Source: Macrostomum lignano
Taxonomy: Eukaryota
Reading direction: 5' to 3'
Length of the DNA: 64,000 nucleotides
Assembly (NCBI GenBank): GCA_002269645.1
Contig: NIVC01002446.1
Span: 62,001-126,000, forward strand
The position numbers and the translations under genes were made by a program. Positions 16,805 through 19,800 of this stretch are shown in pieces (positions within the stretch are counted from its first letter, which is position 1; each line of letters begins with the position of its first letter). The notes beneath the pieces are model-generated. The model was given only the letters and a program-made list of their open reading frames with translations, had not been told where the DNA came from and did not search any database.

Positions 16805-19800
16805 CTGCGGGTTCGGCGGGTGGCTTTTTGCTTAACTAACTTGCAATGCTGGCGGTAATTGCGCCAGCACCGGGGGCGCCAGCACCGGGGGCGCCAGCAC
16901 CGGGGGCGCCAGCACCGGGGGCGCCAGCACCGGGGGCGCCAGCACCGGGGGCGCCAGCACCGGGGGCGCCAGCACCGGGGGCGCCAGCACCGGGGGCGCC
17001 AGCACCGGGGGCGCCAGCACCGGGGGCGCCAGCACCGGGGGCGCCAGCACCGGGGGCGCCAGCACCGGGGGCGCCAGCACCGGGGGCGCCAGCACCGGGG
17101 GCGCCAGCACCGGGGGCGCCAGCACCGGGGCGCCAGCACCGGGGGCGCCAGCACCGGGGGCGCCAGCACCGGGGGCGCCAGCACCGGGGGCGCCAGCACC
17201 GGGGGCGCCAGCACCGGGGGCGCCAGCACCGGGGGCGCCAGCACCGGGGGCGCCAGCACCGGGGGCGCCAGCACCGGGGGCGCCAGCACCGGGGGCGCCA
17301 GCACCGGGGGCGCCAGCACCGGGGGCGCCAGCACCGGGGGCGCCAGCACCGGGGGCGCCAGCACCGGGGGCGCCAGCACCGGGGGCGCCAGCACCGGGGG
17401 CGCGAGCTCTGGGCCCCTCTTGGCTCCACTACCCTCCTAGCGCAACTGCAGCGGCTGTGCGGTTGGCTGCATATCATAATCATTATATTAATAATAATGA
17501 CGCAGTTATGATAATTTTTCCAACTCACCCTGAACGTGGCACTCGTCGCCGTACCGAATCCCCACCAGGTAGTGGCCGGGCGTCGTCGGTGTGTAGGAAA
17601 ACTCGTAGCCGTCGACCATTTCGCGACAGTTCAGCTGCACCTTGCTCGGCCCATCGATGGTGACAGCCAGAGCTCCGCTTGGCGCGTCCGCCGTGGCCAC
17701 CAGGAAGGAGGCGCGCTGACCAACCCGAGCCCGATGAAGGCCTTCACCGCGAACGCGAACCTTGGCGGCCGCGGCGGCGACGACGGAGTTCGCAACCAGT
17801 TCGGCACGGCGGGAGCCACCGCCATTGGCTTCCCAGTCGCCTACGGGTACCTGACAACCGCATTTGAAAATTTTCCAATTAGACTGTTATCGGCCCCACT
17901 ATCGCCTTTTATCGCCTTGTTGAGAGAATGTACAGTGGTTTGCATGGATTTAGTCGTAAAATCAAACCTGAAACGGCGACCCTGGCGCGTGCCGACCATC
18001 CAGGGTGACGGACACCGCGTAAAGCCCGGGCAGAGGCACCGTCCACGCGATGGCGCACCAGCCGTCGCCGCGGTGATCGCTGAACTCGATCTGCGCCTTG
18101 CTGGGCCCCTCGACTGCCACTCCGAGAGCTCCTGCGCCGCGTGCCTGCACGCGGAACTCATTGCCGATGCCAACACCGCCCCGACGCAGGCCTGGGCCTT
18201 CGGCTTCAAGCTCGGGTCCAGACAGCCCGTTGCTGCCGACGTCCTTGACCGAGCCGGCCACCGTCACCGTCCAGGGGCTGCCCGGGACGTGGCGCTCGGC
18301 GAACTGAACCGACACCGAGTAGCTGCCGGGGGCCGATGGCGTGAACGACACCAGGCAGACGCCGTCGCCGCAGTCGGCGCAGTCAACTTCGGCCCGGCCG
18401 GGGCCTTCGACACTGACTGACAGTCCGCCGTAGCCGGCGCCGCTCGTGTCGACGCGAAACTCGCAGGGCCGACCGACCGACGCCGCCGCGGCGAGGCCGT
18501 CCAGACAGTCGCCGTAGGCTCGAACCCTGGCCGCGTTGGCCAAGTCGGTCTCGGCGACGGCGATGGCGAACGGCGAGGCGGCGACTGGCCGGCCGGAGCG
18601 ACCGATGACGGACACGCGGTGCGGCCCGGCGATTCGGGGGGAGAAGGCCACGCCGAGACGGCCATTGGCGAGACGGCGCAGCTGGCAGGCCTCCTCGGAG
18701 CCACCGGGGTCCGTGACCGTGGCCGTGAGACCTGCCGTAGGGGGCGGGCGATAAGTTGGGCATGGAAGATCCTGGGATTCTCAGTATTTGAGCAACACGA
18801 ACTCAAATTACTCAGGTAATTGAACGTATTTATCGATCAATTTTAGCCAATCAATCAATCAATCAACCAGCCAACCAATCAATCAACCAATCAACCAATC
18901 AATCAACCAACCAATCAATCAACCAATCAACCAATCAATCAATCAATAAATCAATCAACCAATCAATCAATAAATCAATCAACCAACCAATCAACCAACC
19001 AATCAACCAACCAATCAATCAACCAATCAATCTACTAATCAATTAACCAATCAATCAATCAACCAATCAATAAATCAATAAAACAATAAAACAATCAATA
19101 AATCAGCCAATCAACCAACCAATCAATCAACCAATCAACCAACCAATCAACCAACCAATCAACTAACCAATCAATCAATCAACCAGTCAATTAATCAACC
19201 AATTAATCAATCAATAAATCAATAAAACAATAAATCAATAAATCAATCAACCAACCAATCAACCAACCAATCAACCAACCAATCAACCAACAAATCAACC
19301 AACCAATCAGCCAACCAATCAATCAATCAACTAGTCAATCAATCAACCAATCAATCAATCAATAAATCAAAAAAACAATCAATGAACCAACCAATCAACC
19401 AATCAATCAACCAATCAATCAATCAACCAATCAATCAATCAATAAATCAAAAAAAACAATCAATCAACCAACCAATCAACCAATCAACCAACTAACCAGC
19501 CAACCAATCAATCAACCAATCAATCTACTAATCAATTAACCAACCAATCAATCAACCAATCAACCAATCAACCAATCAACCAATCAATCAATCAACCAAT
19601 CAATAAATCAACCAATCAACCAATCAACCAATCAACCAATCAACCAATCAACCAATCAATCAACCAACCAATCAATCAACTAATCAATCTACTAATCAAT
19701 TAACCAATCAATCAATCAATCAATCAACCAATCAATAAATCAACCAATCAATAAATCAACCAATCAACCAATCAACCAATCAACCAACCAATCAATCAAC

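Follow-up and report, generated by a model that had tools for sequence, protein, structure and literature searches.

Filamin mechanosensing has been modelled on an alternating rod 2 with two strand-masked sites, which together form its structural basis. The first β-strand of the immunoglobulin-like (Ig) repeat Ig20 sits in the C-D groove of Ig21 until a force of a few piconewtons draws it out. In the structure 2J3S, this strand is added to the CFG sheet of Ig21, where it hides the integrin site, with Ile2144 as its anchor (PMC1948075). The same layout of actin-binding domain, rod 1, hinge, rod 2 and dimerisation repeat is found in Caenorhabditis elegans FLN-1 (PMC3143143), an oyster filamin (XP_056000448.1) and the filamin of the tapeworm Schistocephalus (A0A0X3NMU0). 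It also characterises the gene treated here, a complete filamin gene of the flatworm Macrostomum lignano (Platyhelminthes, Macrostomorpha), which lies on the minus strand of a 64,000-nucleotide stretch of genomic DNA (hereafter the window) at 47255..16386 and comprises 19 GT-AG exons encoding about 2100 amino acids. In terms of the two classes of repeats, the canonical 20-repeat filamin has a rod 2 of the form B-A-B-A-B-A-B-A-B, whereas that of the window gene is B-A-B-A-A-A-B. The homologues of Ig20 and Ig22 are absent, removed in frame at domain boundaries, and three consecutive class-A repeats without class-B partners stand alongside an intact actin-binding domain, rod 1 and Ig24-type end.

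A compromised Ig20 mask next to an intact Ig21 is known from human FLNa and FLNb var-1, from deletion of IgFLNa20 and from I2144E constructs, and the flatworm gene resembles all of these in that respect. Integrin-tail binding is raised by IgFLNa20 deletion, by truncation of its first 13 residues, by I2144E and by var-1 (PMC1948075, PMC2199218). Human var-1, which leaves out 41 residues, the last of Ig19 and the first of Ig20, is an alternative isoform coexisting with the full form; in the flatworm, however, the gene itself lacks Ig20 and Ig22 entirely, keeps Ig19 intact and has the junction within a single exon. A functional precedent is provided by the open mechanosensor region (open-MSR) and pair-deletion alleles of Drosophila Cheerio, in which the mechanosensor sites are unmasked; open-MSR Cheerio shows tighter retention at ring canals and enlarged Z-discs (PMC5011733, PMC11221683). 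These alleles are laboratory-made, carrying either substitutions in both masking strands or deletions of whole A/B pairs, whereas the flatworm arrangement is natural, and only the class-B partner is lost at one site while both repeats of the Ig18-19 unit are kept.

The gene model was assembled from stop-to-stop open reading frames (ORFs) and frame-keeping GT-AG junctions, which gave 18 exons, and a 33-nucleotide micro-exon was then added to give 19. The coding region (16386..47255, minus strand) starts with the ATG at 47255, ends before a TGA stop at 16385-16383 and has no internal stops; its 6.3-kb reading frame is open across all 19 exons, and every splice site is canonical. A phmmer search of all stop-to-stop ORFs located filamin-like pieces between about 42800 and 16386 and, farther upstream, two calponin-homology exons. 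In Pfam searches the model matches CH (PF00307) in two stretches (132 bits, E 9.4e-39) and Filamin/ABP280 (PF00630) in 17 stretches (999 bits), and a custom filamin hidden Markov model (HMM) finds 18 repeats in total, all with filamin motifs.

For typing of the rod-2 repeats, 11 filamins (fish FLNC, amphioxus, crinoid, hemichordate, oyster, cestode, four nematodes and one further sequence) were aligned and cut at the Ig16-Ig24 boundaries, and one HMM was made from each column block. All 11 references have nine repeats in rod 2. The window gene has seven, in the order Ig16-17-18-19-21-23-24 according to these HMMs, and thus does not show the strictly alternating nine-repeat series of class-B and class-A repeats from Ig16 to Ig24. 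On the minus strand, the Ig16-like repeat (22519..22770) scores 56.5 bits with its own profile and 36.7 with the next best; the Ig17-like repeat (20430..22518), with one intron inside, scores 139.6 bits and has a neighbour-joining bootstrap of 88%. The Ig18-like repeat (18556..20429), which includes its N-terminal strand region and also has one intron inside, scores 84.7 bits as Ig18 and 43.7 as Ig20. It is followed by an Ig19-like repeat (18253..18555) with the motif AGYGGLS (101.7 bits; next best Ig17, 91.4), by an Ig21-like class-A repeat (17842..18213), the last three codons of which lie past a 117-bp intron, and by an Ig23-like repeat (16776..17763), which is interrupted by the intron 17528..16805 and scores 113.3 bits against 86.6 for the next-best profile. 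The last of these is sister to tapeworm Ig23 with a bootstrap of 93% in the neighbour-joining tree.

The identity of the middle repeat of the three class-A repeats is central to the comparison. It scores 75.3 bits with the Ig21 profile, 69.4 with Ig17, 22.0 with Ig22 and 21.7 with Ig20. The top match of a PDB sequence search is 2J3S (FLNA Ig19-21), which aligns to the window Ig19-like repeat with 82.8 bits. Among single-domain PDB chains, FLNA Ig21 matches the middle repeat with 75-76 bits and FLNA Ig17 with 59 bits, and the Ig23-like repeat is matched by the Ig23 chains 2nqc, 2d7q and 2k3t. Agreement of this strength greatly exceeds what chance would give. In fish, amphioxus, nematode and oyster filamins, the best BLAST matches of the middle and following repeats are Ig21 and Ig23. 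Moreover, the middle repeat carries the Ig21-specific motifs GPGLxRG and SPFxVPV and a Phe in strand D (KAQIEF), a position occupied mostly by Cys in Ig17, 19 and 23. As judged from its sequence, this repeat is certain to be of the class-A, ligand-binding type and not Ig20- or Ig22-like. Orthology to Ig21, though not proven, is its best-supported reading, because HMM, BLAST and PDB scores, motifs and collinearity with the oyster filamin agree.

The two places from which repeats are missing can be delimited exactly. The junction between the Ig19-like and Ig21-like repeats lies within an uninterrupted 764-bp exon (18731..17968, minus strand), which is separated from the next exon (17850..17529, minus strand, in the GT-AG model) by the 117-bp GT..AG intron (17851..17967), too short for a domain of about 95 codons. 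The place of Ig20 is taken by linker 1 of 13 residues (18214..18252, minus strand) and that of Ig22 by linker 2 of 26 residues (17764..17841, minus strand); in Alignment A1, made with MAFFT, the window protein has clean gaps over the entire Ig20 and over Ig22. The Ig19-like repeat ends with ...SPWTVTVAG and is followed by linker 1 and then by strand A of the Ig21-like repeat, while in the references the pattern R-[IVM]-x-E-x-I-T-R-x-R, that is, the first strand of Ig20, comes right after Ig19. All that is left of this masking strand in the window is SVKDV, with Gly at the position equivalent to Ile2144, and at the sequence level the Ig20 lid is gone. When Ig20 and Ig22 profiles were run against ORFs of at least 20 codons in all six frames of the window, nothing above 9 bits was found outside the known exons, and no alternative exon with Ig20-coding sequence was found at the locus. 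The same Ig19-Ig21-linker-Ig23 order is seen in the public M. lignano entry UniRef A0A1I8F5P3 (P0177), which models 18402-17554 and departs from the window through frame shifts. A 12-residue peptide in linker 2 was considered as an orphan copy of the Ig20 strand, and this was dropped as the main explanation because the true lid is an IKESITR-type strand directly after Ig19, as known from PMC1948075 and seen in a fish control, and because linker 2 is disordered in the AlphaFold2 model described below.

The initial annotation of this DNA had placed the lesion at 17529-18731, which coincides exactly with the two minus-strand exons, and the peptides quoted in it are all in frame on that strand and in the order given. 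Its outline, in which an Ig19-like repeat runs through a short linker into an Ig21-like repeat within one exon, and an Ig23-like repeat follows after an intron too small for a domain, is borne out by the scores of 101.7, 75.3 and 113.3 bits, the bootstrap of 93%, the 13-residue linker and the GT..AG intron at 17967..17851. The absence of Ig20 and Ig22 likewise stands on the profiles, the gaps of Alignment A1, collinearity with oyster and the six-frame scan, and the domain HMMs point to the repeats Ig16, 17, 18 and 19 being present, as had been supposed. Per-domain typing had been set as a test beforehand, and what it returned for the repeat after Ig19 was class A, with about 22 bits as Ig20 or Ig22.

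Comparison with other filamins places the two losses in the context of the whole protein. Repeats 1-15 of the window gene find their best matches in repeats 1-15 of the 20-repeat oyster filamin in order, and repeats 16, 17 and 18 match oyster repeats 17, 19 and 20, so that oyster repeats 16 and 18, corresponding to FLNA Ig20 and Ig22, are the only ones left without a counterpart. Compared with the tapeworm, mid-rod-1 repeats match less cleanly; rod 2 has the same two gaps. Because rod 1 has 11 repeats, as in oyster and tapeworm, the two missing class-B repeats are the entire departure from the protostome standard, and the window gene is a canonical filamin orthologue with rod 2 cut from nine repeats to seven. 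The full 16-24 series is present in Schistocephalus solidus, and a fragment from the monogenean Cichlidogyrus casuarinus runs 18-19-20-21-22-23-24. The initial annotation had allowed that the reduced architecture might be standard for the clade; it turns out not to be usual there, the cestode having the full series and the monogenean fragment keeping both Ig20 and Ig22.

In a wider sample, the full series was found in 30 proteins with a recognisable Ig16..Ig24 tail, and three other reduced patterns were also present, some of which may be partial or mis-predicted models. These are the acanthocephalan Neoechinorhynchus agilis (KAL7667910.1), with 16-17-19-22-23-24, an FLNB model of the cavefish Astyanax (W5L2J5) without 22-23, and a Logan fragment without 18-19. 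They are like the window gene in showing that rod 2 is not absolutely invariant but differ from it in that pairs or other combinations are lost, and the 19-21-23 arrangement is in none of the three. Repeat number varies among invertebrate filamins, with a range of 5-36 domains as relayed by later papers (Light et al., 2012, via PMC7714767 and PMC8275333). Because such variation is documented, an 18-repeat filamin is in itself unsurprising. The unusual aspect is the location of the loss: only class-B members are affected, at two positions, and this in the mechanosensor part of rod 2, which is deeply conserved. In the literature no paper was found on filamin in Macrostomum in this sense.

While the mask is missing, the surface that it would cover is conserved. 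Strands C-D of the Ig21-like repeat, the ligand-binding face (18076..18132, minus strand; 19 residues), share 58-68% of their residues with eight reference Ig21 domains, against 40-50% for the whole domain, and no other part of the domain is conserved so well. Because the identity of the C-D stretch exceeds that of the whole domain, the binding face of the Ig21-like repeat looks maintained, as far as the alignment of residues can tell. The N-terminal strand region of Ig18, the putative mask of the neighbouring site, is 21-59% identical to the references and is modelled by AlphaFold2 with low confidence in the window protein and in the control alike.

Structure prediction with AlphaFold2 was applied to the Ig18-to-Ig23 fragment of the window protein with a nine-sequence alignment. 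All four domains are folded with a mean predicted local distance difference test score (pLDDT) of 76.8, and the predicted template modelling score (pTM) is 0.41, with unreliable inter-domain geometry. Residues 1-21, 190-201 (linker 1) and 290-308 (linker 2) are all below a pLDDT of 50; within linker 2, values are 28-36, and a short helix forms in a poly-Ala stretch with no docked strand. For control, fish FLNC Ig18-21 was modelled with an eight-sequence alignment, and the first strand of Ig20 was recovered as nine residues (IKESITRKR, 187-195) with a pLDDT of about 70. AlphaFold2 is thus able to see the lid at matched alignment depth, and none is predicted in the flatworm protein. The structure prediction that the initial annotation had proposed comes out on its side, since both linkers are modelled as disordered and no lid strand appears.

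Taken as a mechanism, loss of the mask strand except for five residues, together with a conserved groove, would let ligands reach the Ig21-type site without force, and the published effects of removing or weakening the Ig20 mask make it predictable which way binding should change. Ig19, masked by the strand of Ig18, would be the only site that might still be gated. Rod 2 would be shorter and less compact, and probably more extended. The protein would thus act as a 'half-open' mechanosensor that is fixed in the genome and not made by splicing. A permanently open Ig21-type site is probably the likeliest consequence because the Ig20 mask strand is lost while the Ig21-like binding face appears conserved. 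As an overall explanation, loss of two class-B repeats combined with an Ig21-type site open without force is the main one and is held with somewhat better than even confidence.

Several points weigh against it. The AlphaFold2 comparison is imperfectly matched, since the linker columns come from one sequence only, and it consists of summary statistics and not of contacts or coordinates. Assignment of the middle repeat to Ig21 over another class-A repeat depends on a margin of 6 bits, and the tree does not settle it. Furthermore, the M. lignano genome has been duplicated recently and contains many recent gene duplicates. With no more than 40-50% identity between rod 2 and any reference, and with the conserved motif of hinge 2 missing, this filamin copy is judged from its sequence to be evolving fast. 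Low-sensitivity searches of protein databases found no transcript-derived protein matching its C-terminal half. These last features speak for the main rival explanation, in which the gene is a divergent paralogue, either specialised for a particular tissue or decaying into a pseudogene, with a canonical 20-repeat filamin encoded elsewhere in the genome. Such a paralogue, in favour of which the rod-2 identity of no more than about 50% to other filamins and the degenerate hinge 2 can be cited, is rather unlikely but deserves serious consideration. The 6.3-kb frame is nevertheless intact over 19 exons with canonical splice sites, all 18 repeats have filamin motifs, the N-terminal part shares 61% of its residues with the tapeworm orthologue and the ligand face is above the domain background. 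The M. lignano filamin-like entries found in the low-sensitivity searches also all map to this locus. A 54-residue query over the Ig19/Ig21 junction gave no homologous protein candidate; queries with Ig23+Ig24 and Ig18+Ig19 gave one M. lignano entry only, which is A0A1I8F5P3 from the same locus, and a search of contigs for DNA encoding that entry gave no match. One other protein, P0134, was considered as the canonical paralogue, being the only other match with a similar GC-biased amino-acid composition, and was rejected as a filamin-repeat protein of the jitterbug/FLN-2 kind. That the window gene is the sole canonical filamin of M. lignano, and is expressed, remains a doubtful proposition, though one to be entertained.

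The middle repeat may also have a different history, as a lineage-specific duplicate of an Ig17- or Ig19-like class-A repeat that arose after loss of an Ig20-22 block. In the neighbour-joining tree, bootstrap support for the middle repeat is split between Ig17 (45%) and Ig21 (36%), and the window Ig19-like repeat is likewise without clear placement. The grouping of the middle repeat with Ig17, which agrees with the narrow HMM margin, is one with long-branch nematode Ig17 sequences, toward which the repeat is pulled. Its best BLAST, HMM and PDB matches are nevertheless all Ig21, it has the Ig21-specific residues and is collinear with oyster repeat 17, and its protein identity of 45-51% to the window's own Ig17 and Ig19 is not that of a recent duplicate. 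Such an origin is unlikely, and it would change the history and not the present architecture of three lid-less class-A repeats. The same divergence bears on the suspicion that the missing domains reside in unrecognised exons or were lost by assembly collapse. Large repeat-filled introns could in principle conceal exons, but the Ig19-to-Ig21 junction is in one exon, the Ig21-to-Ig23 intron has 117 bp and the six-frame scan for Ig20 and Ig22 is empty. The same adjacency is seen in A0A1I8F5P3, and assembly collapse is implausible because the class-A repeats of the window are only 45-51% identical, too divergent to be merged; an artefact of either kind is very improbable. The remaining question is whether a new lid has replaced the old one, with one of the linkers forming a β-strand that docks into the C-D groove of either the Ig21-like or the Ig23-like repeat. 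The likeliest candidate is AELVANSVV of linker 2, in which hydrophobic residues alternate as is typical of filamin ligands and which resembles both the N-terminal strands of Ig20 and Ig22 and the peptide VASSVF, through which migfilin binds filamin; in the MAFFT alignment, stretches of the two linkers line up with remnants of Ig20 and Ig22. On the other hand, both linkers are below a pLDDT of 50 and a short helix is predicted instead of a strand, while the control recovers the true lid, and linker 1 has just 13 residues without an anchor equivalent to Ile2144. A replacement lid is weakly disfavoured by these models and is considered quite improbable.

The other parts of the protein are as follows, all of them on the minus strand. 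The actin-binding domain (44985..47150), with CH1 and CH2 assigned by Pfam CH, is encoded by three exons. Rod 1 (25296..44942), assigned with the generic filamin HMM and by collinearity with oyster, has 11 filamin repeats, the same count as in oyster and tapeworm, and long microsatellite-rich introns. Hinge 1 contains the probable 33-nucleotide micro-exon (23138..23170), which keeps the reading frame and is flanked by a strong acceptor and a strong donor site; a 16-residue peptide around it is also found in UniRef A0A1I8F459, where it is reached via another acceptor keeping a shifted frame, and this micro-exon may be alternatively spliced. Hinge 2 (16686-16775), of only 30 residues, lacks the motif (V)VETV(T/S)KT, which is kept in all 11 reference filamins, and has two Cys in its stead. 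Together with hinge 2, the Ig24-like, dimerisation-type repeat spans 16416..16775 and scores 90.1 bits with the Ig24 HMM (next best 55.8). A C-terminal Ig24-type repeat after the hinge, a predicted dimerisation module, is present as in canonical filamins.

Among full-length relatives, the Schistocephalus solidus filamin, from a cestode, is the nearest, and over the first 477 amino acids the identity is 61%. In an exhaustive HMMER search of representative proteins, the highest identity, about 55%, is to the M. lignano entry UniRef A0A1I8F459 (P0101), a frame-shifted model of the window DNA that even runs into the same intronic sequence. Together with A0A1I8F5P3, it identifies M. lignano as the source of the DNA. 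In A0A1I8F459, an upstream acceptor adds 15 residues to a rod-1 repeat at 26731-26775 (minus strand), and the acceptor at 26730 gives back the canonical ...HEVQ| pattern of such a repeat. Because this pattern is restored, the public A0A1I8F459 model is probably wrong at 26731-26775.

Exons in the window are GC-rich, and introns are AT-rich and packed with microsatellites. Tandem arrays in filamin introns lie at 16839-17400, 18840-19500, 31088-34393, 35900-37100 and 44565-44950, and they include a 15-bp (CAGCACCGGGGGCGC)n array of about 560 bp, (CAAT/CAAC)n-type arrays and (GACA)n-type runs. One intronic block of about 3.3 kb consists of a short-period repeat that is open in several phases. There are many long spurious ORFs because the filamin introns are largely built of such tandem arrays. 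Within the 5.5-kb filamin intron running from 40137 to 34647, ORF pieces at 37855-39729 (minus strand) resemble M13 (neprilysin-type) peptidases: in one, a hydrophobic N-terminal segment precedes the Cys-rich pattern C..C...PC.DF..F.CG.F, and another scores 24.3 bits with Pfam Peptidase_M13 against a cut-off of 24.5. They appear to be a nested gene or pseudogene on the same strand as filamin. Upstream of filamin, an Ala/Ser/Pro-rich ORF of 583 codons at 58603-60351 (plus strand) matches Pfam ASXH (Asx homology/DEUBAD; E 8.6e-15) with an NEF-type motif, and, to go by this match, looks like an ASX-like gene. An ORF at 2196-2531 (plus strand) has the HTH_48 domain of Mos1/mariner transposases (E 2e-10) and is a transposon remnant. 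A 109-codon ORF at 63479-63805 (minus strand), which ends in ...HCIRSTTVPNLVDNGHTMEEIKAVTGK, has no Pfam match at E<=0.01; we take its end to be reminiscent of transposon-derived recombinase or DUF3504-type tails.

The importance of the arrangement depends on how the gene is used. Since invertebrate filamins were already known to differ in repeat number, the value of the finding is limited, and both paralogue status and expression matter; if the gene were a specialised or decaying paralogue, the loss would tell little about force sensing in the animal. If, however, it is expressed and is the animal's only canonical filamin, the main integrin-type site would be without its force gate, and both class-B spacers would be gone, in a free-living flatworm amenable to transgenesis. 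The alternating architecture is kept in the fish, amphioxus, crinoid, hemichordate, oyster, nematodes and two parasitic flatworms sampled here, and the autoinhibition of Ig21 by Ig20, conserved from nematodes to humans, would then be dispensable or replaced by other control. Natural loss of the lid-bearing repeat with the binding face of Ig21 kept would be the evolutionary counterpart of the laboratory 'open' alleles. Since M. lignano is a laboratory model, this gene would make it possible to ask what compensates for permanent removal of one gate.

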